64,000 bases of DNA from positions 64,294,001-64,358,000 of the forward strand of contig OZ286474.1 in assembly GCA_965644265.1 (NCBI GenBank), in the 5' to 3' direction. Both the position numbers and the translations under genes were made by a program. Below, piece after piece: positions 28,701 to 64,000 of the stretch; positions within the stretch are counted from its first letter, which is position 1, and each line of letters begins with the position of its first letter. This DNA is from Glycera tridactyla. Its lineage: Eukaryota. The notes beneath the pieces were generated by a model that saw only the letters and a program-made list of their open reading frames with translations, did no database searches and was not told the origin of the DNA.

Positions 28701-29212
28701 GATTTCCCTATAATGTTTGGAAATTGCTGAATATACACGCAGTGCGCGAAGGCATGGATGGATCTAAATGGGAATGGATGACAGCAGCATGTGTAAGACA
28801 GGGATGCAATGATGCTGACATATCTCAATCATCCCTTCATGCTCTAACCTCGATGAGATGAGGGTCCCTACTGCCAATGAACTGTTAATAGAATGTATTT
28901 CTGTGTCTGATGATCGTTTCCGAGACCATCACCGTAATTAACAAATATAATTATTGCAGTACGTCCGAGGATTTCGTGACTGGGCATAAAAATGGTGCCG
29001 AAATTGCAATCAAAGTTGCGGGCCGTTTTTTTGTAAGGAAATATACGAATATTCGGCTTTGAAACACGTTTTCAGTGGTTGGAACCACCTCCACATGTAT
29101 TCAATAACATGAATGATTGGAGTGTGGAAGTGCTAACAACTTCTCTCGTCTCCTCGTCAGAAATGATCACAGGCCATGTTTAAATGCTGTTGTTGTTGTT
29201 GTATAAATTTTA

Positions 29213-30502: not shown

Positions 30503-30905
30503 CTGTTGCGCATGTGTACTGCTGTACATGGAGTTTCCTGTGATAAACAACATGCGGCGATAATTGTTTGATATGGCCACATTTCACGCCTGTCACGTAA
30601 CAAATAGAAGGGAAAGAAGATTTCCTCTTGGGCGCGCGTGTGTGCGACCTGGCCTAACTGATGTATAGGCATCTATCCATTCAATTGTTATAATTGATAA
30701 AATTGCACTGGCAAGAAGTGATACACATTCTACGCCCGTAAATGTAGATAAATCTTAAATGTAGATAAATATTGAATGATCACTGTCATATCTATGATGG
30801 AAAATATATATTAAAGCATGATAAAATCATAAATAAATGTATAGAAATTGTAGCTAATGTAATAGACATTGTAGTAAATTTTGTTATCACTATTTTGTTG
30901 ACTAG

Positions 30906-33100: not shown

Positions 33101-33540
33101 GTATCCTATCTTACAAATATCAAAAAGCCAAGATGACTGTACAGTATTTTGAGTTGAATTCAAGGCTTTATTTTCTCCAGTGACTTGTTTATCAGTATTT
33201 ATGTACATTAATTTTGGAAACTCAGATTGACCATTGTCCACTCTTTTCAAATTATTTTCCAATCCAATTTTATTTTAATTAATTGCTTGTCACCAAGTAT
33301 GTTTTTGTTCACTGATTTTGTTCACGGAGTATCCCATCTTACAAATATCAAAGAGCCAGGATTGCTGTACAGTTTTTGAGTTGAATTCAAGGCTTTATTT
33401 TCTCCGGCAACTTGTTTATCAGTATTTATGTACACTAAGCTGGGAAACTCAGATTGACCATTGTCTACTCTTTTCGAATTATTTTCCAATTTTATTTCAA
33501 TTAACTGCTTGTCACCAATTGTGTTTTTGTTCACTGATTT
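33101..33540. repeat. Tandem duplication (~228-bp unit) in the LINE-A esterase-pol spacer
   Basis: gtatcc(t/c)atcttacaaatatcaaa...gttcactgatttt occurs twice. Confidence 0.85.
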
Positions 33541-33949
33541 TCCTAAAAACTTTGCTTAAAGTGCGAATTGTTTTGTTTAATGAACTTTGATTGCCATACA
33601 AAGGTGAAGTGAAAGGTAAGTGTGACTTTGCTGTAAATCAAGAATTTGAACGGAATAATATTGCATCTTGAGGGAACTCATTTCCTGTTGCTTTTCTATA
33701 TATGAAAACTTCTCTCCTCTTTACTGATAGTGGTGATTTATTAACTAGGCTGAATTAATAAGTTTCCCAAGTTGGTGTGGGACCTGCTGTCTCTCCCAGA
33801 GAGGCAAACATAGCTATTTACTAATAAATACACTATAGCAATTTACACTAAAACATCTTGAATTTAGTTGAATTAACTATTGCTGTACTCGAAATATTTT
33901 TCTATTCTAAATTAAAATACAGATTTCCAACCACTGATTCATCATCATC

Positions 33950-36745
33950 ATGTCATCTCTCATAGACCCATTTGTAGGTAAGAAGGAGAGCTTTTCGAAA
34001 CCAACTCCACAACTGGCATCAATACAAGAATGTCATGACTTTAAAGGAGTGAAAATCTTAATATAAGAAGCCTTGTGAAAAAAGTGGATGAGATACAATT
34101 GCTTCTGTTACAGAGTAAACTTGATATTTTGATACTATCAGAATCTTTCCTCACCTCAACTATAGAAAACTCTGAAATTAGTATTCAAGGATATTATATT
34201 ATTAGAGCTGATAGGACTGTGGAAAGTGGTAAGCGTACTGGAGGAGGATTAGTTGTATATATTAGGAAAGATCGTGTTGTTGAACTTATGGATGAAACAG
34301 TTATATGCTGTCCAGACCCCCTAGTGGAAACAAGAGTGTGTTTTGTGATTGGCTGGATGAAAGTCTCATAAAAATTGAACAGTGTAAGTTTGGAGATGTT
34401 TTGGTAACCGGAGATAAGAATATTGATCTAATAACCCTAGATAAGAATGATCAATATCATAAAGTGTTGAAAAATAATAATCTATCACAACTAATTACAA
34501 AACACACTAGGGTTACTGAATTTTAGTGTGAACTGCCCAGAACTCTATCACCAACATGGAGTTCTTGACACAGGAATAACAGACCATAGCATGTTGATAG
34601 TCATACGAAAGAAATTACCTATGTCAAAAGCATCCGAATTCGTTTTTTTCAGAGACTTTGCCAAGGCTGATTTTAAATTAATTCAGGATAAGATAAGAAA
34701 TGCAAACTGGGAGGAACTTTTCTCCAGTAATGATACTGATAATTGCACTAAAATTTTCCATCAGATTATGAATAATATCATAACAGAAAATGTCCCATTG
34801 AAAAGACATCGAGTGCGAGAAAATTGGTCGAAATGGCTCACAGGAGAATACCTTGATTTAGTCAAGGATCGAGAGAGAGCAAATAGAAATTTCAAATTGG
34901 ATAATTCTGAGACTAATAAAACTGCAAAGAAGGTAATAGAGAAGCAATGTAAGAACTTGAAACGAAATCTTCAACGACAATATATAGAAGAATTATTGAA
35001 AGAGTACAAGTCAGAACCAAAAAAACTGTGGGAAACTATACATGCATTTTGGGGAAAATCGAAAGGGCCTACTGAAATTATGAAGATTGGTGATACTACT
35101 GATAAGAATGAAATTTCTGAACGCTTAAATCTTTTCTTTGGAAGTATAGGGAGTAAATTAAGTGATGGGACTGATCCAATTGCCAATTTTCCGTACAATT
35201 TAAATAATGCATTAAGTTTGATGGCAGTTGATTCACATGATGTACGGAAGACAATAGATAGGTTATCAGCAACAAAGGCTGGAAAAGATGATGGGATTAG
35301 TGCTAAAATTGTTAAAAATTGTGTAGAATCCCTTTGCCCTATTTTATAACATTTATCTAATACTAGTATTTCGGAAGGGACTTTTCCTACTCAATGAAAA
35401 TCTGCAACCATTATACCGTTGTTTAAAGAAGGTAGTAGATCTTGCGAGTCAAATTATAGACCCATCAGTCTTTTATGTACCCTTGGCAAGGTCCTGGAAA
35501 GATTGATTCACCTACAAATGTCAAAGTACTTCGAAAGTCATGGTCTACTGTGTCGGGAACAGTCAGGATTCAGGGAGGGGTGCTCCACTGGCACATGTTC
35601 ATCAGTATTTTTAGATAAAATATATTTCAATATTGAAAAACGAGATACCAGTGCGGTCCTCTTCCTGGAAAAAAGGCTTTCGACACAGTAGACCATGTCA
35701 TCCTGCTTAAGAAATTGGAGAGGTACGGTGCAAACCCGATGTGTGTGAAGTGGTTCAAGAGTTATCTGACTGGAAGGAAATGTCATGTAAGGGTAAATGG
35801 AGTGATCTCGAATGAATGTACAGTGTCATGTGGAGTCCCACAGGGATCCATACTGGGCCCCCTGTTGTTCACTATATATGTGAATGATATATCACATTAC
35901 ATGAGGGGGCTCAGTATGAATCTCTATGCGGACGACACTGCTATCATGGTATCAGATAAAGATCCAATGATATTGCAGACAAGACTGGAGGATGCTCTTA
36001 AACAAGCCAGTATAAGCTTAGCTTAAACATCAAGAAAACGCAAATTATGATATTTGGTTCTAAACAACAGGTCAGTCGCTGTAATTTTGAAATGAAGTCT
36101 CAAAATGAGCACGTAAAGCAAACGAAGACTTTTAAATATCTAGGAGTGATCTTGGATGAAACGTTGAGCTTCTCCAGTCATGCTGAACATATTAGATCAA
36201 AAACTATGGGAAGGGTGGGTGTTCTTGGCAGACTCAGGGACAGACTCAGTCGAGATGTGTCCCTGATGCTGTACAGGACACTCATCCTTCCTATATTTGA
36301 TTATTGCGATATTGTTTATGACAGTCTGGGTATGGTAAATGCGAGTAAACTTCAAAAAATTCAAAATAAAGCCTTTCGAATTATAACTCGGAGTGCACCT
36401 TTAACAAGAACATCTTATATACATAATGAATTACAAATGCCATACCTAGATTGTCGTCGACAGTATCATACTCTTATACATGTAAACAACATATTGACTG
36501 AAAATGTGCATCCCCAGTATGACCCATTATGTACCTACTTACAAGTATCACATGAATATCATACCAGATCACTGGGCAAGCAATATGTATCAATAAAACA
36601 ACCTAGATCAAAAATGGCAGAGGGTTCCTTTCATTTCAGAGGTAGCAGCCTATGGAATAACTATGTGAGGAGATATGAAGAATTTGGAAGTAAACCACCG
36701 AAAGTATTTAAAGAACAACTGAAATTTTTTATGCATATTGCTTGA
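33950..36745 (+). pseudogene. LINE pol: APE endonuclease plus reverse transcriptase, several stops and frameshifts
   Basis: LNIRSL, LSESFL, GGGLVVY, GDKNID, TDHSM, NYRPISLL, QSGFR, PQGSILGPLLF, YADDTA, FKYLGV. Confidence 0.93.
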
Positions 36746-37309
36746 ATATGGTGTCTGTAGTGATTGATACAATGTTGTTAATATAGATTGGAGGGAATCA
36801 ACCTTTTCTATAGATGTTTTTGCACCGTGCCTAAGCCTGAAACTGAAATTGATTTTGATTTTGTCTTCGACTAAGAACTTGAATTTGAATTTGAATGTGA
36901 ATATGGTTGTGTAAATCAAAACAAAAACAGAGTGCGTAGGTGGATGACTCTAATAATGTTGAATTTCATCTATTTACATAATAAGTGTACCAGTTGTCTA
37001 TTATAGTTTATGTAAGGTACATATCCTTAATGAAGTTCACTAAAAAGTTTCTGTTAATCTTCTTTCTCTTGCAATAGGGTCTTCTTCTTTTATTCATACG
37101 TCATCCTCATTACATCTCTGTCAAATCCATTCATCAACTTCACCTGAAATTATAAAGATGGTTATTTGTAAACAATTTGGAATGAGTACAGCATGTATGT
37201 ATTGTTGTAATAGTAATAGTTTTCGTCGCATTGGGAACGCCGTCGATAGGAGGCATTGTATATTTGTATTTGTATACAGTACAATTGACGAATCAAAATA
37301 AAGTAACAA

Positions 37310-46165: not shown

Positions 46166-47814
46166 TTACATTCTGGTGATCTCATTTTTGGGATTCACCT
46201 TTCTACCATCGTTTTGCAACTCATATTTGTCTGTTCCATCTCCAGAAGCTGAGGCTAGCAGAGGAATGTTAGCATTATCAATAGCATTTTTAGGGGTCTG
46301 GTCCATAGCAGGGTATAGTACGTTAGGGGTTATTTCCGGGTTATATATCCCTTTACATTTCCAGCCGTCACAGTCCGGCTGGCAGATTTTTGGAATGATG
46401 TAAAATTTGCATCCAATCTCTATTCTGAATACAGCAGTAAAGCGACCTTGTAGAATACGTTTAACTTTCAAAGCTTCCCATGGAAGTAGTCTCAATCGCT
46501 CAGGCATGGGTAAAGGTGTATTCCCCATCCTATTTCCCACAATCAGACCCCTCCAAGAGGCAGACAGATACGACATGCATCGGAAGTCTTTTACCTGATA
46601 AGGTCCTGGGACTCCTAGTCCCATCAAATGATAATTTGACATAGACCCAGGAAGTTTCATGATCAAAATGTCCTGATATTCCACTAAGTTTCCTAATTCC
46701 AAGATCAGCTTACTCCTCGTTCTGCAGCGATGAGCGTACATGGTATACGCCAAGTATCCTATTATGACTAATAGTCCCGCCACAGCCAGAAGCGCCAATA
46801 CACCTACTACCTCGATATGCTTTCCTTCATAACACATGTCCTGAGTAAAGGTATCCACTTGGAAACCATCTATATGAGGGATCCTACTTTTTGTAGTGGT
46901 TGGAATGGTCCGTCCCAATAGACGTTCATAGAAGTCCTGAGGGAGGTCCTCCAGCCCATCTACAGCTGTAGGCTGTAAAACACCAGCTAAAGTATATGCA
47001 TTCATCATCTTTTCTAGCAGACAATACGAGCGCCTAGTGTATATAGCCAGGCCCATGGAGGCAACGGCTACCAAAATACTGAGCAATCCTAACACATTCG
47101 AAAGTGTGAAGAATTCGTCTGCTGAGTCTAAGTCCCACATACTAGCAGCAATCTGCTTGATAGGATTCACATCCAGCCCTTCCTTTGCTCTTTTCATCAC
47201 AGAAGCCAGTTGCATCGAATAATCGTAATCTCGATTCAAATTCAATTCAAAGTCCTCACTCACTTTGATTTCTGGCAATTTCGGTAGCCACTTCTCACTA
47301 TACAAAGTTTCACCATTCACCTCTTCAATATTTTTTCAAATCATAAATATGTGACAAAGCAGCTAGATTAATCGGATGTACGACAGTAAGCCCAGACGAT
47401 TTCTTCACACAGTTATTGATACGGGCTGGTAAAGCTGCTGCTGAGATCATATTAGATATATGAATAGTTCAACCGCATGGTCATTCCATTTGGCAATATA
47501 CGCATCCTTCTCGTTGTTTAGGTAGCTCAGCCCCACAGTGTTGAAAGATGCTCTCAGCGTTATGTACCAACACCTCACCATTTCCAACATCCACTAGGTC
47601 TACAACAGGCTCAGTTTTCTCAAATCTGAAACCACATAGCTCTCTAACCAAACCAGAATCATCTTGAAAAATGGCCGCCATACAAGATGGTTTATCCATG
47701 TCAAATATTTTCATAGATGATGAACACCTAAAAGCAGTTGTATCATCACATCTAGCTAATTCTTTATGAGTCATCTGAATATAATTCAGATTATCGTCAG
47801 ACACTCCGAGGTAT
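46166..47814 (-). pseudogene. env: env, C-terminal half (Cys-rich ectodomain, TM1, TM2, C-terminal domain)
   Basis: YLGVSDDN...CVYC...PARINNC...HPINLAAL; hydrophobic segments VLGLLSILVAVASMGLAIY and VVGVLALLAVAGLLVIIGYLAY; continues in frame from 55601. Confidence 0.82.
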
Positions 47815-47908
47815 ATAGTTCAAGCGAGGCATGGAGTAACCGCACACCAGTCCGCTCTGAGAAGAATCTAACCTCACGCAATATCAGCAGATGCTATAGC
47901 AACGAACT

Positions 47909-50173
47909 ATGGACAGCTTCAGGGACTATATCTCAGGAAGGAAAATCGATAACATCGAGGATTCTGAACGGAAAATGGAAGGCAAAATCAAGCAAACTGG
48001 TGAGAACTTGAGCGATAATAAGAGTACTACGGATGGCAAGTACACCCCCCTCCCCAGAATTGCAAGGAGTTGTAGTGCTAGATCTCCAACAGACCATGAC
48101 CCAGACAATAAGAAACAACGTAGTATAGATACTGACCACGAGCTGCAAAATGAATGTTCTAAAACAGCGAACAGTGATATTGATTCACCAGAAGATTCTT
48201 TTAATTCATTAAGTGTTGCTAGTGATGAAGAAAGCGATGAAAGTGTAGTAGTAGACGATGAAGTGGAAAAAGTGGATGAATTTGCAAAGAGGCCGCTTGT
48301 ACGACTGCCAGGCTCGAATCAAGTCTCGAATGGTTCGGGAATCAGCAAGCAAATCGAGATCGCAGATCCCGAAATGACCGCCGAGACAATCGACACTCAC
48401 CCGGAGGCGAACACCGATAAACAACTTGCAGCCGTCGGTCCCCACTGCAAATCCTCCCCGTGCTCCTCGGAATCATCGCGCGTGACCACACCGATAAGTG
48501 TCAATGAGAAGAACCGACCTGACGACCATGGCGGTCACGCTTCAATGAGCACAGATATTGACTTCCCCACTGAAATCGAATTCTCCCCTTCACCAAAACC
48601 AAATGGTGGGACTACCTTGATATGTCAACCTCCTAATGCCTTTGACATTGTGAATTTGCGCAAATCGCTGCGCGAGGATCTAACTGAGATAATACACTTG
48701 GAACTGAAAAGTGATGTCAAACAACAAGTCAAATCAGAATTGATAACCGAATTGAAAACAAGTATTGTACACGAGATAAAAACAGAACTTGTACACGAAG
48801 TTAAAAGTGATCTTGTGAAAGAAATTAGGACAGAACTAAAGCTCCTGACCCATGCTGAAGTCGACAGGTGTGTCAAATCTGAAATGAAAAGCATGATCAA
48901 AACAAAGAGCTTCCAAAAAGAACTGAAAGAGGAAATAGACAATAAACTCAAAAATCGAGACATGATAAAAAACGTGTGCAAGGATGTTGCTAAACAAGAA
49001 TTGGCTCCACTCTGCAAGAAGATCGTCAATGATGATGTTTCCCATAAAATAAACAGTGAATTGGGGAAATTTCAGACAACATGGAGAAGTGAACTAACGA
49101 CAACAATAGAAGACTCGCTAATCGATAACACCAACATGCAACAAAATATCATAAAACATGATGAACTCCTGGAGAAGCTTGGTGACATTGTGAAAAATCA
49201 ACAACAAGAGATATTATGGCTTGAGACGGAACTGAAAACGATGAGAGGAGACATGGATGATAAAATCGAAACACTAAATCAGGAGATCATACAATTGAAA
49301 GAAGAAGTAAAGAAGATGATGGATATTGGAATAACTCCTGATAGTAAGGACATCAACAAAATTCAAGAGAAGATAACCATCTTGGAAAGAGACATCGAAA
49401 TATTGAAAAAGAATGACCGTCTTAATGTCATTATTGTAGACGGCCTGACCTTCGAGCGTGATACTTCTCTCTTCGAGCAGCTGGTAAGAGTGTTCAATGA
49501 TATAACTGGCTTAAAGTTAAATGAAAACCATTTGGCTCAAGCAGTCCGCTTTGGACCTGTCACAAAGGGGAAACCTAGGCCTGTGAGAGTGAGATTTGTG
49601 AACCCCAATATCAGAAGGGATCTCTTGCAAAGAAAGTCAATGTTCCAAAAATCATCAATTTTTATTAGGGAACATCTCACGCCGAACGAAAATTCTATCT
49701 TTCAAGAGGCGAAACAAGCAAAAATTGACAAAAAAATACACCAAGTATGGACATCACAGGGGCAAGTTTTTGTTGCGAAAACAGAACATGAGCAAAAAAT
49801 CTCTATACCCAGCATTGCCAAACTAAATGATATAATTAAGAGTAAAGCCAAGCAGCCGAACGATGTTGGATTCAAACCTAGACGAAGGTGGAACCCATTA
49901 AAGGGAAATCAAAATCCACCACCAAATTCAAGAATCACAGACACTACCACTGGAGCCTCAAATGCTGAGCTAAAATCGCGAGAAAACACTCAGAATAAGT
50001 CAAATCCATGGACCAATATCCCATACAAAAATGAGGCGACTATAAAATCGCGGGATGTAAGTAGCGCCGGCGGAGCAAATCAAGCCCATACTAGCGCGAC
50101 CTTGTCAGATGGGCTAAACCTGGCGAATCCGTTCGATACCCTCGGCAGCCTAGAAGAATCTCACCGACCTTAG
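47909..50173 (+). CDS. LINE ORF1p, 754 aa (disordered N-terminus, long coiled coil, RRM-like/FP25K-like domain, disordered tail)
   Basis: Uninterrupted ORF; VIIVDGL...RFGPVTKGKPRPVRVRF...FIREHLTP...VWTSQGQV is homologous to ORF1 of family A. Confidence 0.9.
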   Translation: MDSFRDYISGRKIDNIEDSERKMEGKIKQTGENLSDNKSTTDGKYTPLPRIARSCSARSPTDHDPDNKKQRSIDTDHELQNECSKTANSDIDSPEDSFNSLSVASDEESDESVVVDDEVEKVDEFAKRPLVRLPGSNQVSNGSGISKQIEIADPEMTAETIDTHPEANTDKQLAAVGPHCKSSPCSSESSRVTTPISVNEKNRPDDHGGHASMSTDIDFPTEIEFSPSPKPNGGTTLICQPPNAFDIVNLRKSLREDLTEIIHLELKSDVKQQVKSELITELKTSIVHEIKTELVHEVKSDLVKEIRTELKLLTHAEVDRCVKSEMKSMIKTKSFQKELKEEIDNKLKNRDMIKNVCKDVAKQELAPLCKKIVNDDVSHKINSELGKFQTTWRSELTTTIEDSLIDNTNMQQNIIKHDELLEKLGDIVKNQQQEILWLETELKTMRGDMDDKIETLNQEIIQLKEEVKKMMDIGITPDSKDINKIQEKITILERDIEILKKNDRLNVIIVDGLTFERDTSLFEQLVRVFNDITGLKLNENHLAQAVRFGPVTKGKPRPVRVRFVNPNIRRDLLQRKSMFQKSSIFIREHLTPNENSIFQEAKQAKIDKKIHQVWTSQGQVFVAKTEHEQKISIPSIAKLNDIIKSKAKQPNDVGFKPRRRWNPLKGNQNPPPNSRITDTTTGASNAELKSRENTQNKSNPWTNIPYKNEATIKSRDVSSAGGANQAHTSATLSDGLNLANPFDTLGSLEESHRP

Positions 50174-50560
50174 TGAACAATGGCTCGATTAATAAGCGCT
50201 ATACGAATTAATGACAGATTAGCAGGCTTCGAGAATCCGGTAAGAACGAAGGGATATATACAATTGAAAGGCGGGGTGTGGTTTGTGCTCTATATCTCGG
50301 GTTTAGTGATCAAATCGGAATCGATACCGTGGGATTTCCCTCATCTTAATGACGTCATCACTCCATATATGGTAGTTAATTCCAAACACCATATGGTATT
50401 GAACTTGCGGGATTTTCCTGATAATAGTGACGTCAGAACCCCATATAAGGAAATTATTGTTAAAATTAGGAGTTCCGCGTTTTAACTCCATACCATCGCA
50501 TGAATACAACTGCCACAACCATGAATGAATATATTATAATGATACTATTAATTTCTGCAG

Positions 50561-51460
50561 GCTGACTGGACATCATCACTGAGACTAGCCAAGAGTCGAG
50601 TCCAAATTCCTCCAAAAAGATGTCCTATATACAGAAGACGAAAACAGCTAGAAGGGATCGAATACCCTGAGGTTCTCGTCACAGGCTCCAGCCACGCTGT
50701 CCATACTGGCTGTTATATCAAGAACCTATCTACTGGTGACGCAATGGGAGAAGTCATGTCAAAATGGAAATTCAGAGGCTTCAGTGGTAGCAAGTGGACC
50801 GAAATACAAGAACACCTACATGGTCGTTTTGGTGATGATCAGCGTAAACATGATAAATATGGTAACACTATTCAATCCCTGACATCTGATGGCTATAGGC
50901 CTAACTATGTAATCATCATTCTTGGAAGTAATGATGTTGACCAGTTTAATGTTGAAATAAGAAATATCTCAAAACAAATCACCAACCCATTGGTGAGGAA
51001 TACAGAAATTAACAGAGAAAAAATTGCTCGTTTTGGTAAGATTAAAGCAAAAGTTCTCAACTTGCTACGACACCTAGAATACCTGTATCCTGAAGCACTT
51101 ATCATAACAATACCAGTCCTGTGGCGCCCTAAGTGGTGCGATGAAGCAAGATCCCTGGCACTTTGGATTGATCATCTGTTCGTGATGGAACTGAAGAATA
51201 AGCACCTTGATGTTGGTATTCAGCAGAATGTTAAAATGCTACAAATAAACCAATTGTTTGTACGCCCATATAAGAATACCCCACTTGAACAGACCCGTAA
51301 ACAAAATCGTAAACATGCTGCTAAATTTGGTGAACTACTAAATGGCATGTTGGCATTTGATCGGGTTCATTTGAACAACTATGGCATGCGTATTCTTAGT
51401 AGACACATAGTGGGCTCAGTATTGGACCATTGGATTTCTAAATCTGAAACTAACAAATAA
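50561..51460 (+). CDS. SGNH/GDSL-type esterase of LINE family B, intact frame beginning at a splice acceptor
   Basis: Frame is open from 50552, upstream of the listed ATG 50744; VTGSSH (I), GFSGS (II), ILGSND (III), DRVH (V); preceded by tattaatttctgcAG ending at 50560. Confidence 0.87.
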   Translation, partial: ADWTSSLRLAKSRVQIPPKRCPIYRRRKQLEGIEYPEVLVTGSSHAVHTGCYIKNLSTGDAMGEVMSKWKFRGFSGSKWTEIQEHLHGRFGDDQRKHDKYGNTIQSLTSDGYRPNYVIIILGSNDVDQFNVEIRNISKQITNPLVRNTEINREKIARFGKIKAKVLNLLRHLEYLYPEALIITIPVLWRPKWCDEARSLALWIDHLFVMELKNKHLDVGIQQNVKMLQINQLFVRPYKNTPLEQTRKQNRKHAAKFGELLNGMLAFDRVHLNNYGMRILSRHIVGSVLDHWISKSETNK

Positions 51461-52351
51461 AACGGTCAGCACAAATCTCACTGCCACACGACGAATGATA
51501 GATTGGGGATAATGGGTTATCACAGCAAATAACATGACTTGTTTGTATCTAGTGTGCGTGCTTACTCAAAGTGCGAAAAGACTACGCCATTATCCATTCC
51601 AGATGACCAGATGGGTGGTTATATGAAATGAATAATTGGGAAGCTGGACCGGTTTTTCTCGAGGTATAGTGATCTGCTTTTGTTTCTGTTTTCTATATTT
51701 TATTTTTATATATTTTTGCTGCCCGAAAGGTATTGTCAAGGTCGTAGATGCTGGATGTCGTTGTGTGTGATGGTGTCTCGTGTCTTTGGTCCTCTCCTTA
51801 AAATGGGGTCCGCCAATAGGCAATGGGGTACTATCGCATACATTCGGCATCAAATCAGTCTCTATAGCTTTGAAAATGTTTCTCTGGGATCTTGAAACAG
51901 CTAATATATATTTTTATTTAATGGCATGAATTCTGATTGACTGGTGCTCAGCTGCTGGCGTATAGGATGGACAACCATGCACTGGTCCTCTCCGTAAAAT
52001 GGGGTCCGCCGGAACATTGGAAACTGGCTATCCTGCATGCCATCATCGGGTCAAATAACCATTCAACCACCATTCAAATAAACCATTCAATCGATTAAGA
52101 ATAATTTGTATAGCCTATATATTTTTGAAATTATCAAATGGGTATTTGGAGATGGAGAGGATATGTATGTACTTGGGAGGAGGGGGGGGGAGGGAATAAG
52201 AACTAAGATCACAGTTGTCACTCACTTGAAAGAACCGAATTGAATATACTATATCTGCTACTATCTTAGATATGATTGTATAGCTTCTCAGGGACAATAT
52301 GATATTTTCCACTTGCATCAAAGCTAAAGTGCATCATCACTTTAATCTGAA

Positions 52352-55233
52352 ATGAACATTTGTATAAACTCATCTAAAGAATTAGCCGAATTATCTGGTA
52401 TCAAATATGCATATCTGAATGTCTGCAGTATTGTCCGCAAAATTGAAGACATAAGAGTTTTCTTGTTTAGGAGTAAGATAGACTTGCTAATTATTGGGGA
52501 AAGATTCCTGAATACTTCTATATCTGATTATGAGATTCAGATCAATAATTATAATATGTATAGATTCGACAGGGATTTAGGACAGGGAAAACGAGGGGGG
52601 GGGGTCTACTTGTGTATACTAGAATAGACAGAGATTTTGAATTCATTAGTATTTGGGGTCTATGTACGCCAGATCTAGAATATGTATGGCTAAAATTGAA
52701 CCTGAAGGATACAAGACCAACATATATATGTGGCTACTATCGTCCACCTGACGGAAATGTTATAAATGCCATTGACCTACTTGATAATAAGTATAAAGAT
52801 GTCATACATCTAGGGAATCATGATGTAATTTTTCTCGGAGACACGAATATAGATTTGGCATCTAAAAATAGACACTCTGAAAAATTAATAAATTTTTTGA
52901 AAGAAAATCACCTTACGCAGGAGATAATAAATCCAACTCGTATCACGAGTAAATCAAAATCGCTGATAGATCATATTATCACAAATAACCGAGAATTATA
53001 TGCTCGATCTGGCCAAATAGATATTGGTGTCTCTGATCATTCTATGATATTCACGATTCGAAAGAAGGGCCGATCATCTAAAAGAAGTCACTACATACAT
53101 TTGAGAGATTATAAAAACGCAGACTTTGAGAAAATAAATGCTGAGATTTTAAACATAGATTGGAAATTTCTGAATAATCTTGATGATATAGATTCCACAA
53201 TGAAAGACTTCTACATGAAAATTGGGCCTATTTTTGAATCGCATATTCCTGTCAAAAGAGTGAAAGTGAGAGATGATGCACCAGCATGGATGACTGGGGA
53301 GTATCATTGCATGGTAGATGAACGTGAGAAGGTAAGCAAACAGAAAAGACTTGACCCTACCCCTCAGATATGTTTAAGAAAGAAAGAAATTCAGAAAGAA
53401 ACCAAGAAATTGAAAATCCATCTTCAACGTAACTTTTTGAAAAGCAAACTAAACGAAAATCATGATGATCCTAAAACTCTGTGGAAAACTATAAGACATT
53501 TTTGGCCATCAAATAAACAAAACTCATCAATTAATAAAATAAATGGTAAAACAAGTGATCTTGAAATGTCTGAAGAGTTAAATAAATTTTTTGGAACCAT
53601 TGGAACCTCCCTATCAGAAACAATTGGACCTGTGGACCTCGATCCCACATCACTTATTAGACAGAAATATCACAATACCTTCTCACTATCAGAAACCACC
53701 AAAGATGCAATCCAGGAAATTATTGATGATATTAACCCGCATAAGGCTGGAATGGAAGATGTCCTCTCTGGTAAGTTTCTTAAGGGCATATCAGCATCTA
53801 TTTCACTACCGCTATCCCACATTTTTAATAAAAGTATACGTGATGGTAAATTTCCCACAGCTTGGAAACAAGCGACGATTAAGCCTTTATTTAAAGAAGG
53901 ACAGAAATCTGACCCTGCAAATTACCGTCCTATAAGCCTGTTAATACCTGCTAGTAAATTACTAGAGAGGATAATACAAAATCAGGTATCTTCTTACTAC
54001 GAAAGAATGAATCTACTGTGTCGAGAACAGTCGGGTTTCAGAAAGTTTCACTCCACTGGGACCTGTTTGATAGATTTTTTGGATGGCATATATCGAGGTA
54101 TAGATGAAGGAAAAGCAAGTGGAGTGATCTTCCTGGACCTGAAAAAAGCTTTCGATATGGTGGACCATTCAATCCTTTTACAGAAATTATCGGATTACGG
54201 TTTTGATCCACGGTCTGTACAATGGTTTGCCAGTTATTTAACCGATCGCGTATGCATGACACGAGTTAATGATGTTACATCAGGTCGACTGCCAATCAAG
54301 TGTGGGGTACCACAGGGATCAATACTTGGCCCTAGTCTTTTTACAATCTATATTAATGACCTTCCTACTTTCCTAGACAACGTGAAGACCAATTTGTATG
54401 CAGATGATACTGCCATCTCAGTCAGAGGAGATAATGCAAATGACTTAGAAATAAAGATGAATGATAACCTCTCTAAGGTTGCAACATGGTTGGCAGCAAA
54501 TAAACTGTCACTAAATGTAAAGAAAACGAAAGCGGTTGTTTTTGGTACTCGTAATATGATAAAAAATTATGGAAATTTAAATATTATAATAAATGAAACT
54601 AAAATTGAGATCGTAAATGAAATGAAATATCTGGGGCTCGTGCTTGATTCGCTGTTGACCTTTAACACTCATACTGAATATGTACGTAAAAAAACTATCG
54701 GCAAGATCAGGTTTCTTGGTAGACTAAGACCAATTTTAGATCAATCAACGACCATGATGTTATATAAAAGCCTGATCTTGCCGATTATTGATTATTGTGA
54801 TATCATATACTGTGGGACGAGTCAGAAAAGCTTACAAGATATACAAAGATTACAAAACCATGCCCTCAAGGTCGTCGCACGAAAACCCAAACGCACAAGT
54901 ACTATAGAATTACATGAGGAATTGAATATGCCCTTATTAGAAAAACGTCAAGAGCACCACACTCTTATACAAACAAGTAGAATGCTAGACGAAAAGTCGC
55001 CTGGAAAATTTAAAGATTTTTGTAAAATAAAAGCTAATCGACATTCTCACCAGACAAGAGCCAGTGCGAAAACATTGCTTGAAAAACCTGATACTAGATT
55101 GAGAATGTGTGAAAATAACTTTACAGTGCGTGCAGCAAAAATTTGGAACAAGTACTGCGAAGACTTTGAGGACTTTGAATTATTGCCTTATGATCAATTT
55201 AAAGACCATGTGAAACAATTTCTGCATTTATAG
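52352..55233 (+). CDS. LINE pol (APE plus RT) with a single frameshift in a G10 run at 52595-52604
   Basis: YLNVCSI, IIGERFL, GGGLLVY, CGYYRPP, GDTNID, SDHSM, NYRPISLL, FLDLKKAFD, PQGSILGP, YADDTA, KYLG; 873 codons open after the run. Confidence 0.93.
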
Positions 55234-55600
55234 TAGACTTACTCTTTAAACTTTTGCTATATATTGACCAAAGACGCCTATTTATCGGACATGAACATTG
55301 ACGATACACATCTCACCTCTATTACGATACCAACCCAAAAGGAAAGAAGTTTATAATCTTTGTAATGCTCACCTTATTATTTTATTTTTTCAAAATTCAG
55401 CATTTATTAAGTTAGAAAATGTTTTTGGATTTCTTGGTTATTATACTGTATTTTATTTTTATTTTTACATATTTGTCACTTATATGTGCGGATACTAACC
55501 CATTGCCATTGTCACTAACGATTTACTGGAGAGGGCTGCTACAGGCAGTTAATTGTATTAATCGTTATAAAATAAAGGTATATCTATCTATCTATCTATC

Positions 55601-57123
55601 TATTCAACAGGAGTCTTCAGACGACTAGTCTGGGTTGAGTCATCTGTAATAGGAGTATTATGGATGGTCACAGAGTACAACCTAAAATCTTTTGTCAATG
55701 CTGACAACGGGAAGTCCAAAGAGACCATTAGATACTCCTCATTAGTCCTAAAATAATTCACCCGTCCATATCGATAATAAAACTGAGGAGATAATTCCGT
55801 GAGATGAAAATAGGGATAATCTCATCTCATTTGCTCCTGCAGAGTCAAGATAGTATCTGTCAAGATTGCGTGATTCACCAAATAGGGGCTCAACTTCCCT
55901 CTTACTAAATCATTCACTGCTGCCATAAGATGGTCAATCTGAGGGCTCAATGTTTGCATTTTTTCTATCATGCTCGCAAGCACTGAACTGGAACTAATGC
56001 TGTACTGCATCACCCTCCAGAGGCGGTTGTCCACATGATGGGACAGGTCCTGCAGCTGTCCCTGCAATTCCGTTTGTAGTGCTGAAATGGTCCCTGCCAC
56101 GTTGGTAAATCGTTGGGACACTACATCCATGAACGAAGCAGTTTCACTTTGAAATTTGGTGAAGTGCCTCGCCGCTGTGAGTTGCTGATCTGTAGCAAAC
56201 TTCACCACCCTAGCCAGTCTCTCAACATCTTCGTTGATGGATAGTCCGAATACGTGTTTCCCTATCCAAGCGAACGGATTCCATCTCTTAACTTGACTAT
56301 TACACCTCACCACAGGTATGTACTGTTGAACTATTTCTCCCATCTCACCCAGCTGTATATCTACCTGCATAGCTAATTCCAAATAATGGTTATATTGTGC
56401 TAATTTATGATCCAAAATATTATTGACTTCATATGAGTCCTTCTGGGTGATATTCGCCAAAATCAAGGGTTCTGGTGCCTGTTGGGCTATTCTATCTTTG
56501 ATAGAACGTCTGGTTCGTTTTCCCTGTCCCCATTCATCCATTAGAGATGAACATTGAGGGTCTGGGCATTGTCTCTCAAATTCCTTTATACAATCAGGGT
56601 TATTATTTTCACAAGCGTCTCTAGCAGCTCGTCTTGAGCATACCAGACGTTTCTGTCTACCAGAGGATGTGAGATCCTTATCGATATCACTTATATCCTT
56701 CTTCATACACGCTTGATAGTTTACTACATAAGCCTGATAGGTCTGAGTATATCACCCATAGCTACTCCAGTTCACATAAGAGGCTAGATCCAAAATGGCA
56801 GTCCAAACTTTATTCGCATCTCTTACCATTTGGCGTTGAAACTTTCTCAGAAATCTATCTAACGAGTGGTTATCAGTACAATGCTGGTCCGTGCATGTTG
56901 TTTCTACATCTCTGAACAATTGCCTGCTAACTTCAGGAGGTATATCTACACAAAAGATATGTGTCCAACTTGAAGAAGCTAGATATAGTGTTTTCAAAGG
57001 TTGAAAACTCACACCATAGTTTGGTCTACTTACTGTATCTAGAACCCCATTGACTTCCATTTTGATATTCGAGATATCCAAATTAGATAAGGCCATAAGG
57101 GCAACTGTCCAAACCAGCGCCAT
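55601..57123 (-). pseudogene. env: env, N-terminal half (signal peptide, furin-like sites, fusion peptide, heptad repeat); two in-frame stops
   Basis: MALVWTVALMAL signal; RPNYGVSFQP...WTHIF; KRTRR and VKR/WNPFAWIGKHVFGLS; heptads; GKLSPYLV. These features resemble class I F-type fusogens (baculovirus F, errantivirus env). Confidence 0.85.
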
Positions 57124-58854: not shown

Positions 58855-59987
58855 CTACCTGCTTGACCTGGGTTCTATTTCTTTGGCCAGATCTGCATGG
58901 ACTCTGGGTTCAGGATTCGCATGAGGGTCCTTAGAAAGGGTCCTTATCCTGCTATCGTCTTCGTCTCTGAATAACGATAATTTATTGCCATGTATAAGAG
59001 ATCCCAGAGACATGTTTGTGTGGGAATCTTGCAACTTATCCAAAACTCCGCCAAGAGTATCGGTGATACGATAGGGGCCCAAATGTTGGCTATCAGTTTT
59101 TCCTACTGCTTGTCCCGCTGGTCTGGCGGTTTTCATCCAGACAAGATCACCGATTTTGAAAGGCATCTAACCCACTTGGTATCGTTTCTCATATACCTCC
59201 TTATACCTCTTTGCAGAAATTTCTATATTCTTTCGGGCCATTTCCCTATGATAAGTAAGTTCTGGCAGCAAAGCCTCCAGGACTTCTTGGTCCTTGTCTG
59301 ATAACATTTCTGGATCTCTCACATGACAATATTCCCCAACCGAGGTATCAACCCCTGTCGCCAAAAACATGGGGGTATACCCTGAGGTCTGAGAGGTTGA
59401 AGTGTTTAGGTTCAACCTAACTACTGGCAGATATTGAACCCAATCATTGGTTTTACTCACCAACATCCTCATCATTGCTAGAATCGAACTATTCACTCTC
59501 TCCACTTTGCATTAGATTCGGGCCTATGACTACTGGTAAAAATACGTTTGTATCCCAAGAGAGATGCTAAGGTCTCCATCAGGATACTTCTGAAACTCTG
59601 GTGCCTATCAGTGGTTAAAATAACTGGGCAACCATGCCGACATATCCACTCACGAAAGAACGCTTTTGCAAGTGTTTCCGCCTTCTCATTTGGTATTGCA
59701 GCTAGCTCAACATAAGACGAAAATGAGTCTATCATCACCAGCAATTTAGTATGTCTTGTTTAAGGGTCTGCCGGAAGGGACAGGACATCCATATGGACAT
59801 GATACCAAATAGGGAATATTTGGCGCAATTCCAATGGAGACTTATAAGAATTATAAGGTCTCTTACCACTTCCGCATGTCTGGCAACTCTGTACGTATGC
59901 TTTCATATCTGCAGTCATCTTCGGCCAATAATACTTATTACGTACACTTATAAGTAACTTCGAGGCGCCTCGATGGTATCCCATCAT
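58855..59987 (-). pseudogene. Integrase (H-H-C-C remnant, D,D-E core, GPY module) in pieces
   Basis: YYWPKM...CQTC; VHMDV; IDSFS; LTTDR; HRPESN; ERVN; LGPYRI. Confidence 0.92.
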
Positions 59988-60984
59988 GTAAGTCTATTAC
60001 ATGGCTGCGAAACTGGATAGGTAGGCAGAGTTGCAAATAGTGATCGTCCCTCTCGCGGGAACCCGGCGTACTAAAAATTCTGTACATCAGGTCTTCTGCA
60101 CCTAGGATATGATGCTGATGGTCTCTCAATACGACTTTCATTTTCTCAGATTCTTTTGGTAGGGTTCCAAATTTCAAATAGTAATACATCTCTTTGAAAT
60201 CTGGACTTTCTTGTTGCATATCCCTCCACAAATGTGAATCTGCTTTAAACTGTTTCAGTTGTTCTTCTAAAAGGCGTGGTCCCAAGAAAGCATGTATCTC
60301 CTCATCGGATTCGCCATCTTTGGTTCCTTCCACGATTTCGTCTGAAACCATAGCCTCTTTCTGAGAAGTTTCCACCGCCTGCTTTGTATAAACATCACGA
60401 TTATTAGAGGTATGTCGGGTTTCATTTGCTATTTGACTTATAGTCTTTTCCCTAGGCATATCACCACCTATAGTCTTCACAAACATTACTATCGTTTCAT
60501 CCAACGGTGTCCCTAAATCCCTTTGGGTATAGTTTGTTTTGATGGATTTCTCTTCTGGTATCCTAGATAGTGCATCTACAGCCTCGATGGTTTTTCCAGG
60601 GGCATGCGTGATCTCTATGTCAAGACCCTGGATTTCCAGAGCCCATCTTAGGAGATTTGGTGCTGAAGAAGTCCTCAAATTCTTGAGATATCGTGCAGTC
60701 AAGTTATCAGTGGTGACATTCATTTTCTGTCTCCCCAATAAATGACGATATAAGCGTATTGACAGAATCAGACTGAAGGCTTCTTTGGAATTTATGTCCC
60801 AAACTCGTTGTTGTTCATTCAACTTTTTAGAGAAGAATGCCACAGGTCTGAGGCCATCATTGTCGACCTTCTGACTCAAAATGGATGATATACTATGTTT
60901 GGATGCATTGGTAGTCAGGAAGAATTCCAGATCCAACCTTGGATAGTGCAAGACTGCATTTTTCAAAAGTTCGGCACTTTCCAT
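59938..60984 (-). pseudogene. RNase H and linker
   Basis: TNASKHSISSILSQ, RPVAFFSKKL, KEAFSL, VTTDN, RWAL, HAPGK, VDALSR. Confidence 0.9.
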
Positions 60985-62128
60985 CCCACAGAAAAGGTGT
61001 ATCTTTTCGAGTAAGATTCGTAATGGGTTCGGCTATTTCTGCATACTTCTTGATGAATTTCCGGTAATATCCGGTAAGACCTAGCCATCTCCGGACTTCA
61101 GTCACGTTGGTCGGAGCCGGAAATTTCTGAATAGCCTTTACCTTTTCTGGATCTGGCTCAAGACCCTTTTCAGTCCAAATGTGACTTAAAAACTTGAGTT
61201 TCTTGCGTGCAAAATCACATTTTCTTGAGTGTCTGGTGAACCCATATTGTCTGAACTGATTGAACACTCTGGCCAGATGGACCAGATGGTCCTTAAAGGT
61301 CCTAGAAGCCACGAACACGTCATCCAGAAAATTCCAGACATACGTCTGTCCCAGACGACTAAGAGCTGCACTCATAGCTCTACTATATGTAAATGAAGCT
61401 AACGAGAGTCCAAAGGGTAATCGAAGAAATTTGTAGCTACCTTTCCCAGTTGTGAAAGTTGTACAGTCTTGACTATTTTTCTCCATAGCTATCTGATAAT
61501 AGCCAGATAGCATATCCAGAGAGGACATCCATCGTGGTGCTTGCCTGGCTATTGATTCGTATATATCGTCAAAAGTAGGCATCACGAACTATCCAGCCTC
61601 CTTCTGAGTCTTAGCATTCAGTGCTCGATAGTCAATGCAAGCTCTGTATAACACAGAACCGTCTGGCGCAGGATTTTTCTTTTTGACCATTACCACTGGA
61701 GACTGCCAAGAACTGTCAGACTCGACAATCAATTTAGCGGCTAGTAACTCCTGTATCTGTTCATCCAGAGATTCTTGCTTCTCTGGACTCAATTTGTATG
61801 GTCTCTGGCATACAATTTTTGCATCAGGCTCGAGTTTGATTTCATGTTCCACACATGTGACCTTTCCTAAATGTTCCGTAGAAGTGGCAAATATATCACG
61901 ATTCGCATTCAATAAGTCTACAAGTTGTCTTTTCTGTTCTCTGTTACAGTCTGACAAATCAAGAATTTCGTGCCATTCGATTTCTTCAAATACACAATCA
62001 CCACATAATTCCAGACCCAGCACGTTTTCTTTGAAAGCCTCTTCATTAAAGTAATTAGGCGGAACGGTTACGGTCGCCTGCTGATTTGATGTTACCATCT
62101 GCATAATGGCCATTACCTCTCCGCCCAC
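60893..62128 (-). pseudogene. Gypsy reverse transcriptase (in-frame stop at 61589)
   Basis: QRPYKLSP, WQSPVVMVKKK, RACIDYRALN, LDMLSGYYQI, TTFTT, LPFGLS, FLDDV, FLSH. Confidence 0.95.
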
Positions 62129-62179
62129 ATTACATGGATCAATGATCTCAATGTCATCATCGAAAGTGAGGCGTGCCAG

Positions 62180-62902
62180 TTACATGGAGGGTTGAACCTT
62201 TAATGGTTTATCACCAGAGTTCGCCACTTTTACTACGAGAGACCCTGACTCACTGATAGTAACTGAGCATGGATCCAACTGTAAGTTCACAGGTGTATCT
62301 GCATTGTTACTTGGGACTACGAAACCTTGGACTGATTCTACATCACTTTCGCCTGTGAAACCAGGAGAAAATAATGCGCTCAGCCAGTATTTATCGGCAA
62401 CTTGTAGCTTGATTGTTATGAATGTATGTGGTGGGATTGTGATATGATCTGTACTTATGACATCGATCGCCCGGTCAATAGGAACATGTGGCAGTATAGT
62501 AGCAATCAGTGGAGTTCCCTCAAAGGAGACAATACCCTGTTCAAGGTCTATAACCGCTCGGTGGTTCTTTAAAAATTCCATACCTACTATCATAGATACT
62601 GGCAGACCCTCAGCTACCATCAGGCCCACCGAAATTTCACGGCCTGCAATTTCAATAGGAATTTCCATGTGTCCTAAAATTGGAATTTGTTTCCCTGAAG
62701 CGTCTGCTAATTTCAAAAATTTACCACCATCTATGGGCAAATAGCACTCCAGGTTGAATTGCTCCCACTGATTCTTACTAATCAGACTTGTGGTGGCCCC
62801 GGTATCTACAAGAGCCCTCGCAACCATGCCATTATGCATCACACATATGAGACTACCATCTAGATTCAGAGAGAATTTTGTACCATCATTTTTAGCAAAC
62901 AT
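62180..62902 (-). pseudogene. Retropepsin-type aspartic protease and spacer
   Basis: ALVDTGATTSLI and MIVGMEFL motifs. Confidence 0.92.
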
Positions 62903-62950
62903 TATATTTGGATCACCACTTTTTGTCTTTGGAGGAGTGAATATGGAAGA

Positions 62951-64000
62951 TCATTGCAACATTTGATTATACCAACATGATTCGGTGGGATGATTTTTCC
63001 CACAATTTTTACATGTTGGGGGGCATGTCTTGTCCATGGCACTTTTCCTGTGAGGACAATCTGCCATGAAATGTCCCTTGCAACCACAGTGAAAACATAC
63101 AGCAGCTACTATGCCAGTGGAGGAAGAGGAGAAGTTATTAGCAGGTTTTGTGAATTTCGCATTTGGCTTAACTGTGTCTTTCTCAGGACAATGTGGGGCA
63201 TAATGTCCCACTTGTTGACACTTATAGCAGGTTACTGAAGCCATTTGTTGGACGAGACTTTCCCCCTAATCCTACTATTTTGTTGAAATTATCATTATTA
63301 CCACCATTGCCGTTTTTACCGCGGCCTTTGCCATGACCTCGGCCAGCACCTCTTTTCATGCCTCGGCCTCTTGAAATTCTGCGGGAAAATCCGGAATTTC
63401 CAGAATTTCCCGGTTGAGCATACATGACTGTATCCTCAGTCTGCTCAACATCGGCCTTTGTAGAGGCCTGTTGTTTCTGAGTAGTCGCACTGGCGACTAT
63501 TCCATCTTCATATCTAGAATCTGAAAGTTTCGCAGATTTCGCTGCTCGTATGAAGTCACTTAATGTCTTTGGCCCTCTGGTGGTGATTAATTGCCTTACA
63601 GCCTCTCGGGCTCCTCTGACAATAACGAACATTACATATCTTCCTTCAATAGGAGAGAACTCCTCATCTTTTTCATTAGTATAGACTTTTCTGGTTATTG
63701 ACATCACCTTTCTGATAAATTCTTCTGTTCGTTCTGCCCCTTGACGTAATGCGTCCAATTTGTATAATTGGTCCCAAGGTTCAATGCCTAGTTTACCAAA
63801 TTCTTCAATAAATTGGGCCTTAAGTCTCGCCGGTTCTTTGTCCTGGAGAGATTCGTACCACATAACTGCCTCATCTCCAAGAACTAGAGGTAAAATTTCC
63901 TCTGGTTTCATACCTTTAAAGGTACAGTATCTTTCTAGTCTGCCTTACCAAACGTGGGCATCATCTTTGGCCGCATCAAAAATGGGTAATTTCAAAATAC
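62951..64000 (-). pseudogene. gag: gag (capsid-like region, RGG-rich stretch, three zinc knuckles), truncated by window edge
   Basis: LGDEAVMWY, QFIEEF, LRQG; CYKCQQVGHYAPHC, CFHCGCKGHFMADC, CKNCGKNHPTESC. Confidence 0.88.

Follow-up and report, generated by a model that had tools for sequence, protein, structure and literature searches.

A LINE retrotransposon with a putative SGNH esterase gene that is apparently split by a short intron

Esterases in described retroelements and introns in their genomic copies

Esterase-type (type IV) ORF1p proteins are encoded by CR1/L2 LINEs such as ZfL2-1 and chicken CR1 (Kapitonov & Jurka 2003; Schneider et al. 2013, PMC3905857; Metcalfe & Casane 2014, PMC4120745). 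In those elements, which are endonuclease/RT LINEs with a tandem-repeat tail, an SGNH esterase with an intact catalytic set is encoded upstream of ORF2 as the C-terminal domain of one continuous ORF1p behind a coiled coil. None of the esterase ORF1ps in Repbase was reported to have an RRM, and H191 and S228 of ZfL2-1 are given as transposon-specific conserved positions (PMC3905857). LINE-1 ORF1p (type II; coiled coil, RRM, CTD; PDB 2yko) belongs to an element that has no esterase gene and ends in poly(A). A GDSL esterase as a stand-alone extra ORF3 has been described in bdelloid LTR retrotransposons and in Athena elements, which are other element classes, and the LINE esterases do not cluster with those ORFs (PMC5408684). 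Penelope-like elements, a different element class, retain spliceosomal introns in their genomic copies although they replicate through RNA (Arkhipova et al. 2003, cited in PMC1636488), and introns reported in L1, Tad and TART transcripts lie in UTRs or antisense RNA or represent aberrant splicing (PMC1636488). Translational coupling of LINE cistrons by termination and re-initiation occurs in SART1 (UAAUG) and human L1 ORF2.

The window analyzed here is a stretch of 64,000 nucleotides from Glycera tridactyla (GCA_965644265.1, OZ286474.1, positions 64,294,001 to 64,358,000), and all coordinates refer to it. An initial annotation had noted that an esterase frame without an initiator begins at a splice acceptor, had proposed that a donor within ORF1 is joined to it to give an ORF1p-esterase fusion of about 1,015 aa, and had inferred a retrovirus-like strategy in which the intron-retaining RNA is the one that retrotransposes. 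All sequence features that it reported were found to be correct, whereas its interpretation is only partly supported: an intron ending at the proposed acceptor is well supported, but the fusion is not. Its comparison with an esterase inside one continuous ORF1p does not describe this lineage, where the esterase is a separate cistron.

Organization of element A and of the related element B

The LINE under study (element A) consists of the following features.
47909-55603 (+): element A from the ORF1 start to the 3' tail, the 5' UTR and true 5' end lying somewhere in 47321-47908
47909-50173 (+): ORF1, 754 aa, with no internal stop
50057-50062 (+): donor GAT/GTAAGT inside ORF1, phase 0, a possible alternative 5' splice site
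50180-50239 (+): putative esterase mini-exon 1, 20 codons, starting Met-Ala-Arg, with the ATG in an A-3/G+4 context 6 nt after the ORF1 stop
50240-50560 (+): favoured intron, 321 nt, GC 0.38, phase 0/0, donor CCG/GTAAGA, acceptor ...TTTCTGCAG/G
50331-50456 (+): two 48-nt direct repeats inside the intron (50331-50378 and 50409-50456), each holding the palindrome TGACGTCA plus CCATATAWGG, possibly a regulatory module; two of the three TGACGTCA sites of the window lie here
50561-51460 (+): esterase exon 2, 299 codons plus stop
51461-52351 (+): non-coding spacer of 891 nt between the esterase stop and the ORF2 ATG, with a 28-nt direct repeat at 51787 and 51983; relatives have spacers of similar length
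52352-55233 (+): ORF2 (AP endonuclease and reverse transcriptase), broken by one frameshift in the endonuclease-coding part, with no in-frame stop seen elsewhere
55581-55603 (+): 3' tail, (TATC) x 5.8

ORF1 has a disordered N-terminal part, a coiled coil, and a predicted L1-ORF1p-like RRM and CTD, with a C-terminal NPFxxLGxL motif a few codons before the stop. Its AF2 model, of moderate confidence (pLDDT 74, from a 2-row alignment), shows helix 2-26 followed by two alpha/beta domains. The C-terminal half of ORF1 is predicted to fold like LINE-1 ORF1p, and the ten best Foldseek matches are all human LINE-1 ORF1p entries (2yko, 2ykp, 2ykq, 2ldy; E 4e-5 to 4e-4). Similarity to LINE-1 ORF1p is not detectable by sequence, as no Pfam Transposase_22 hit was obtained and only Baculo_FP_2nd was found at 21.7-24.1 bits (24.1 bits on the domain piece). 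ORF1 is 25% identical to ORF1 of L002 and L004, two related loci from other assemblies, that of L002 having an in-frame stop.

The esterase frame is closed by a stop at 50549-50551 and open from 50552 to 51460, and its first ATG lies at 50744, after block I (GSSH, 50684-50695), so that the predicted catalytic Ser has no initiator in front of it. The frame contains block I Ser47, block II Gly91, block III Asn127, and block V Asp270 and His273 (numbered from 50552), and these columns are kept in 22, 23, 22, 17, and 18 of 23 aligned rows, respectively, the remainder being mostly gaps. Pfam matches are below the gathering scores (Lipase_GDSL_2, 19.9 bits against 32.9; Lipase_GDSL, 18.6 against 23.6), although 5 of 23 relatives hit at up to 4e-7. 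The AF2 model (pLDDT 88.4, pTM 0.87) predicts a flavodoxin-like SGNH fold, and Foldseek against the PDB finds GDSL lipases, sialate O-acetylesterase, and PAF acetylhydrolase at E 1e-6 to 1e-4. The esterase therefore looks functional as judged from its catalytic residues and predicted fold. The solved ZfL2-1 esterase, of the same fold class, was not recovered by phmmer or by a profile search, nor was it among the listed Foldseek matches. A search among 1.84 billion protein representatives detected 49 relatives (best E 1e-18, best identity 32%).

ORF2 gives Pfam Exo_endo_phos_2 and RVT_1 matches without RNase H, and two frame pieces both align to ORF2 of L002 at 38% and 47% identity. Like a CR1/L2-group LINE, element A has this ORF2 and a short-tandem-repeat tail and not poly(A). 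An Rfam scan of the element gave nothing relevant, including no UnaL2 3' element match, and no target-site duplication was found.

No other copy of element A was found in the window by blastn, but tblastn revealed element B, a second and decayed three-gene LINE of a related family, with 33% identity to A for ORF1, 33% for the esterase, and 35-53% for ORF2.
29204-36902 (+): element B
29204-30502: ORF1-B, with 1 in-frame stop; only the part matching residues 417-650 of the ORF1 of A aligns
30573: start of a 'Met-Ala-Thr' mini-ORF
30905: end of the acceptor TAG/G, at the 91.6th percentile
30906-31781: esterase-B exon 2, open
34057-36745: ORF2-B, with at least 4 frame changes
36875-36902: tail, (GAATTT)4.7; that of L002 is (ATA)26

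Predicted splice sites, their counterparts in relatives, and the choice of donor

In order to evaluate the splice sites, a simple weight matrix, a generic metazoan approximation and not host-specific, was scored against every GT and AG of the + strand of the window. The donor at 50057, which lies directly after the GAT codon 50054-50056 and 38 codons before the ORF1 stop (50171-50173), is at the 98.4th percentile, and the acceptor ending at 50560 is at the 97.7th. Readthrough from ORF1 into the esterase is excluded, as the spacer 50174-50551 has many in-frame stops. Three features had been missed by the initial annotation, namely the ATG at 50180, in the same frame and 6 nt after the ORF1 stop, a stronger phase-0 donor at 50240 (99.2th percentile), and a third phase-0 donor at 50276. 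All three phase-0 donors would keep the frame.

A pyrimidine tract plus AG sits exactly where the esterase frame opens in A, in B, and in seven related loci from other assemblies (L001, L004, L006, L007, L009, L011, and L012), at percentiles from 91.6 to 98.6 among all AG sites. The position is the same alignment column, whether the preceding codons are open, closed by a stop, or in another frame. A conserved 'Phe/Leu-Gln' before exon 2 was at first considered a coding N-terminal peptide, but this reading was dropped because in L007 the AG is kept in a different codon register, in B, L006, and L009 the pyrimidine tract lies before the in-frame stop, and the intron-less L010 uses CAA there.

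In A, L004, L007, and L009 an ATG within 20 nt of the ORF1 stop opens a short frame that ends in a donor at or above the 90th percentile in the phase that the acceptor needs. By dinucleotide shuffling, chance is 5-11% per locus, and only 5.3% of the shuffles give such a model for A. L012 has the same layout, whereas in L001, L006, and L011, with contigs too short or readings ambiguous, no exon 1 could be identified, and B lacks a good donor after its mini-ORF. In L004, L007, L009, and L012 the two exons lie in different genomic frames and the GT-AG pair restores the frame, with intron lengths of 521, 175, 118, and 328 nt, respectively. In exon-by-exon BLASTP, exon 1 residues 51-69 of L004 match residues 5-23 of P0029, a protein of an intron-less relative (E 0.003; Smith-Waterman p 0.004), and exon 2 residues 2-198 match P0029 residues 25-222 (E 9e-36), so that the exon ends abut on an intron-less relative. 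For A this contiguity is shown only by alignment register, because BLASTP of exon 2 picks up from residue 37.

A global MAFFT alignment of short exon pieces with full proteins misplaced the fragments and was replaced by BLASTP and by pairwise Smith-Waterman and global scores with shuffles. The mini-exon of A starts Met-Ala like 9 relatives, has their length of 19-24 codons, and resembles them weakly (p 0.04-0.08). It starts like P0029 (Smith-Waterman p_max 0.042), and its summed global score against the N-termini of relatives is in the top 3% of all 20-aa windows of ORF1. The mini-ORF of B resembles the N-termini of relatives as well (p 0.033). In contrast, the ORF1 residues before 50057 show no similarity to these N-termini (p 0.5-0.8).

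The fusion proposed initially would arise by splicing from 50057 to 50561, which would remove 504 nt and join, by arithmetic, 716 and 299 codons (1015 aa), whereas unspliced RNA would make ORF1p with its own C-terminal tail. Both sites are strong and in phase 0, B has in-phase but weak donors in the ORF1 frame, and a fusion would put a coiled coil in front of the esterase as in known esterase-type ORF1p proteins (PMC3905857). However, no in-phase donor inside ORF1 exists in L004 or L009, and the fusion would delete the conserved NP[FY]xxLGxL tail of ORF1p. Relatives start the esterase with their own ATG, either in a continuous ORF (L002, the proteins P0019 and P0029, and others) or in a mini-exon of 19-69 codons at or next to the stop of the upstream ORF (L004, L007, L009, and L012). 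Among the 1.84 billion representatives searched, no protein carries this esterase at the C-terminus of a long ORF1-like protein. Furthermore, one strong in-phase GT in the last 80 codons is not rare by chance (roughly 0.08, estimated from site densities). The fusion is therefore considered unlikely, although the 50057 donor cannot be excluded as a minor alternative site.

It might also be argued that there is no splicing and that a decaying element has simply lost the start of its esterase frame, the splice-like sites being chance or by-products of coding sequence. ORF2 of this copy has a frameshift, B is clearly decayed, and codons for Phe, Leu, and Pro followed by Gln (CAG) mimic an acceptor. 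This is also unlikely, as the same arrangement recurs in at least five independent, highly diverged elements from two genomes with frame restoration by GT-AG pairs, the exon ends of L004 abut on an intron-less homologue, the pyrimidine tract of B, L006, and L009 is not coding, and exon 2 is intact in both A and B with catalytic residues kept. Least likely is translation from unspliced RNA by internal or non-AUG initiation near 50552, with the pyrimidine tract belonging to an internal ribosome entry signal. Some internal entry sites have a pyrimidine tract shortly before the start, and L002 has such a tract 13 nt before its esterase ATG without any intron. However, A has no AUG before the catalytic Ser, and this reading does not explain the ATG mini-exons, the matching phases, or the contiguity on P0029.

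A probable three-gene LINE with an inferred intron in its esterase gene

The reading favoured, with moderate confidence, is that element A is a three-gene LINE encoding an L1-type ORF1p, a separate SGNH esterase, and ORF2, and that the esterase gene is very probably interrupted near its N-terminus by a GT-AG intron, most likely 50240-50560. On this model only spliced RNA can give a stand-alone esterase of 319 aa, which would probably be translated by re-initiation after ORF1, as the ATG abuts or overlaps the upstream stop in A, L004, L007, and L009 (gaps of +6, -14, +7, and -20 nt). Unspliced RNA would give ORF1p and be the form copied into the genome, since all these genomic copies keep the intron. 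The analysis itself establishes the sequence features, the conservation of their position and phase in independent relatives, and the modelled folds, whereas the occurrence of splicing, the donor used, the mode of translation, and the reason for keeping the intron are inferred from DNA alone. Neither the genome of the window nor close copies of this family were in the collections searched: there was no exact ORF1 match, and word-based protein searches with ORF1, whole and over residues 490-680, found nothing, so that the conservation described rests on diverged relatives. This copy, with its ORF2 frameshift, is not itself an intact element, and the model leaves unexplained why retrocopying of spliced RNA has not removed the intron.

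Compared with the esterase-type ORF1p of CR1/L2 LINEs, the esterase of element A is a separate cistron behind a full L1-type ORF1p and is apparently split by an intron. Compared with the introns of Penelope-like elements and of L1, Tad, and TART transcripts, the inferred intron interrupts a coding gene of a LINE at a position conserved across diverged families. With retroviruses, in which unspliced genomic RNA contrasts with spliced subgenomic mRNA, there is an analogy of logic only, as by inference one protein is made only from spliced RNA while the unspliced RNA is replicated, but there is no evidence for regulated export or packaging and the spliced RNA would still carry ORF1 and ORF2.

A further reading, possible but tentative, is that a lineage of LINEs present in at least two genomes has kept a spliceosomal intron at one position inside a protein-coding gene through deep divergence (24-35% protein identity between members), even though every copy passes through RNA. 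That would imply an active division of labour, in which unspliced RNA would be the replicated genome and the ORF1 message and spliced RNA the esterase message. Some feature would keep spliced RNA from being copied or would make the intron indispensable in cis, one candidate being the repeat module with TGACGTCA palindromes inside the intron of A. The element would also be the first described LINE pairing an L1-type RNA-binding ORF1p with a separate esterase.

LINEs are usually described as intron-free, with one or two ORFs, and the esterase of CR1/L2 elements as a domain of ORF1p that never co-occurs with an RRM, whereas here an ORF1p with a predicted RRM and a putative esterase are encoded side by side, and a conserved intron inside a LINE gene is rare. 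If splicing is confirmed, gene callers and repeat libraries that ignore it mis-annotate these esterase ORFs, several database proteins found here beginning inside the intron and one starting at a TTG. Splicing would also suggest that the dose of the esterase is set in this way, and the family would give a natural case for asking how a retroelement keeps an intron through RNA-mediated copying, a question so far posed mainly for Penelope-like elements.

ORF1-esterase junction and gene content of element A

In order to verify the sequence features of the initial annotation, the region between ORF1 and the esterase frame of the LINE under study (element A) was re-examined on the + strand, and the following features were obtained:

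47909-50173 (+), ORF1, 754 aa, without internal stop
50054-56|50057-62 (+), GAT|GTAAGT, candidate donor in phase 0, 38 codons before the ORF1 stop
TTTCTGCAG (+), ending at 50560, candidate acceptor
50549-51 (+), stop closing the esterase frame
50552-51460 (+), open esterase frame
50684-50695 (+), block I Ser motif of the esterase
50744 (+), first ATG of the esterase frame, located after the block I Ser motif

The coordinates reported in the initial annotation are therefore exact, and its observation held in full. Every GT and AG of the + strand of the window was scored with a generic splice-site weight matrix based on approximate frequencies, and the donor at 50057 was found at the 98.4th percentile and the acceptor at the 97.7th percentile. 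As the in-frame spacer between ORF1 and the esterase has many stops, readthrough is not an option. The initial annotation had proposed that removal of 50057-50560 creates an in-frame fusion of ORF1p with the esterase, which by arithmetic would comprise 716 + 299 = 1015 codons.

ORF2 (52352-55233) has AP-endonuclease and RT domains and is broken by one frameshift in this copy, and the element ends in (TATC)n at 55581-55603. A non-coding spacer separates the esterase stop from the ORF2 start (51461-52351), and unusually long spacers of this kind (0.8-1.1 kb) recur in relatives (L002 5416-6509 and L007 1365-2174, both loci on contigs that encode related esterases). The spacer of element A contains a 28-nt direct repeat at 51787 and 51983. 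The assignment of the element to CR1/L2 rests on domain content and on tandem-repeat tails, and not on a phylogeny. In structure prediction the esterase frame folds confidently (pLDDT 88) into an SGNH hydrolase whose best matches are GDSL lipases and PAF acetylhydrolase, and Ser47, Gly91, Asn127, Asp270, and His273 are kept and are conserved among relatives. The C-terminal half of ORF1 gave a model of moderate confidence (pLDDT 74), and its ten best matches in the structure library are all human LINE-1 ORF1p, covering coiled coil, RRM, and CTD. This LINE therefore pairs a predicted L1-type ORF1p with a predicted esterase, a combination that Schneider et al. (PMC3905857) reported to be absent from Repbase esterase ORF1ps.

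Relatives of the esterase and other elements of the window

A full HMMER scan of 1.84 billion representative proteins with the esterase frame gave 49 hits, with a best E-value of 1e-18 and identities of at most about 35%; neither the genome of the window nor close family copies were present in the collections searched. Nearly all hits are proteins of 150-340 aa with the esterase near their N-terminus, and none is a long protein with the esterase at its C-terminus. The contigs encoding these relatives show the same gene order. L002 has an ORF1 that is 25% identical to that of element A, followed 145 nt later by an esterase ORF with its own ATG and then by ORF2 (38% identical). The esterase ORF of L002 (3061-5415) carries a C-terminal extension of about 490 aa of low-complexity sequence. 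The related loci L004, L007, and L009 show ORF1 tails followed by the esterase. In L010, the intron-less esterase ORF of the database protein P0019 has no ORF1 in the 285 nt upstream, where TATA-like stretches occur (L010 1-400), suggesting that in some relatives the esterase may be the first ORF.

A tblastn search also revealed a second, decayed element of the same three-gene architecture and of a related family in the window itself (element B, about 29204-36902, +), with ORF1 33%, the esterase 33%, and ORF2 35-53% identical to element A. Element B has 1 in-frame stop in ORF1 and at least 4 frame changes in ORF2, although its esterase exon 2 (30906-31781) is still open, and its tail is (GAATTT)n. 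The esterase is thus a separate cistron in this lineage, not a domain of ORF1p.

The window is a nest of retroelements, and its remaining features were as follows:

59938-63911 (-), LTR-retrotransposon pol region with aspartyl protease, RT, and RNase H
4533-6767 (-), RT fragment
11199-12068 (+), RT fragment
21875-22917 (+), RT fragment
46166-47320 (-) and 55822-56706 (-), long ORFs without Pfam match, flanking element A on the opposite strand
8001-14000, GC-rich stretch (0.47-0.54) with strong negative GC skew and overlapping + strand ORFs, one of which has an RT domain
18614-18911 and 25371-25759, two runs of N

Evidence for a probable intron in the esterase gene

An alignment of the esterase frame with its relatives shows that the first residues of the open frame of element A are homologous to relatives, and that many "short" relatives open their frame at the same column. 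The DNA at that column is in every case a pyrimidine tract followed by AG. This holds for elements A and B and for the related loci L001, L004, L006, L007, L009, L011, and L012, at the 91.6th to 98.6th percentile. In B, L006, and L009 the AG is part of the in-frame stop and so the tract is not coding, in L007 the AG sits in another codon register, and the intron-less L010 has CAA at the corresponding Gln. These points argue for a nucleotide signal and not for a conserved peptide. The database proteins P0015, P0014, and P0012 (L011 274, L004 2006, and L012 461) start inside the pyrimidine tract of the intron, P0015 at a TTG, and these starts are annotation artefacts of intron-blind gene calling.

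Upstream of the acceptor, L004 has a perfect GTAAGT at 1503, which closes a 69-codon frame that starts with an ATG overlapping the ORF1 stop and lies in a different frame from ORF1. When the exons of L004 were searched separately, exon 1 residues 51-69 matched residues 5-23 of the intron-less relative P0029 (E 0.003), whereas exon 2 residues 2-198 matched P0029 residues 25-222 (E 9e-36). The two ends are contiguous on P0029, which is the classic signature of a true intron. L007, L009, and L012 repeat the pattern, each having an ATG mini-exon of 19-24 codons that abuts or overlaps the upstream stop, and a GT donor and an acceptor of matching phase (phase 2 in L007, phase 0 in the others). Intron lengths are 175, 118, and 328 nt, respectively, and the exons lie in different genomic frames that the GT-AG pair restores. 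The donors of these relatives from assembly GCA_013332675.1 (L007 343, L012 145, L009 807) read GTATTG or GTATGG, and a host-specific donor preference would cause the generic matrix to underrate them.

To explore how often such a model arises by chance, a dinucleotide-shuffle test was employed, in which an ATG within 25 nt of the ORF1 stop was required to open a frame that stays open to a donor at or above the 90th percentile in the right phase. Such a model arose in 5-11% of shuffles per locus and was present in 4 of the 5 loci tested.

Donor choice and inferred expression of the esterase

Element A has the family pattern, with the following features:

50180 (+), ATG in an A-3/G+4 context, 6 nt after the ORF1 stop, opening a mini-exon of 20 codons
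50240 (+), CCG|GTAAGA, donor in phase 0 at the 99.2th percentile, stronger than the donor at 50057
50240-50560 (+), resulting predicted intron of 321 nt
50276 (+), further in-phase donor

The mini-exon begins Met-Ala, as do nine relatives, has their length, and resembles their N-termini weakly (p 0.04-0.08; top 3% of all ORF1 windows), whereas the residues before 50057 show no such similarity (p 0.5-0.8). An in-phase donor inside ORF1 is absent in L004 and L009. The fusion would also remove the NP[FY]xxLGxL tail of ORF1p, which lies close to the C-terminus in diverged elements and is conserved in element A (about 50120-50150), L002 (about 2876-2902), and L009 (about 690-720), the corresponding motif in L004 (about 1200-1230) being YDFPPLGEY. 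The 50240 donor and a stand-alone esterase of 319 aa are therefore favored, although the donors at 50057 and 50276 remain possible alternative sites, since all three are in phase. The interpretation offered in the initial annotation is thus only partly supported: an intron ending at 50560 and the copying of the intron-retaining RNA agree with the present reading, whereas the ORF1p-esterase fusion is not supported.

Esterases have been described as a domain of ORF1p (PMC3905857, PMC4120745, PMC13343379) and as an extra ORF in LTR and Penelope-like elements (PMC5408684), and introns have been reported in L1, Tad, kangaroo-1, Penelope, and Athena transcripts and in TART antisense RNA (PMC1636488). 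No report of a LINE with an L1-type ORF1p plus a separate, intron-split esterase was found in literature searches that did not extend to Repbase itself.

The sequence features and their shared position and matching phases in the relatives were established directly and the folds come from structure models, whereas splicing itself, the donor employed, the esterase activity, and the mechanism that follows are inferred from DNA alone, in the absence of RNA data and from copies of which A is defective in ORF2 and B is decayed. The intron of element A holds two 48-nt direct repeats (50331-50378 and 50409-50456, 77% identical), each with a TGACGTCA palindrome plus CCATATAWGG, and two of the three TGACGTCA sites of the window are located here, as compared to 0.84 expected in the whole window. 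This may be a cis-acting module, but it is not shared by the introns of the relatives. Intron-less relatives exist (L002, L010, P0029, and others) and could be products of intron loss, and the survival of the intron through RNA-mediated copying is unexplained. In the inferred mechanism, unspliced RNA would encode ORF1p and would be the form that is copied, because the genomic copies keep the intron, whereas spliced RNA would additionally allow the esterase to be made, its translation probably occurring by re-initiation after ORF1, given the stop-to-ATG spacing of +6, -14, +7, and -20 nt.
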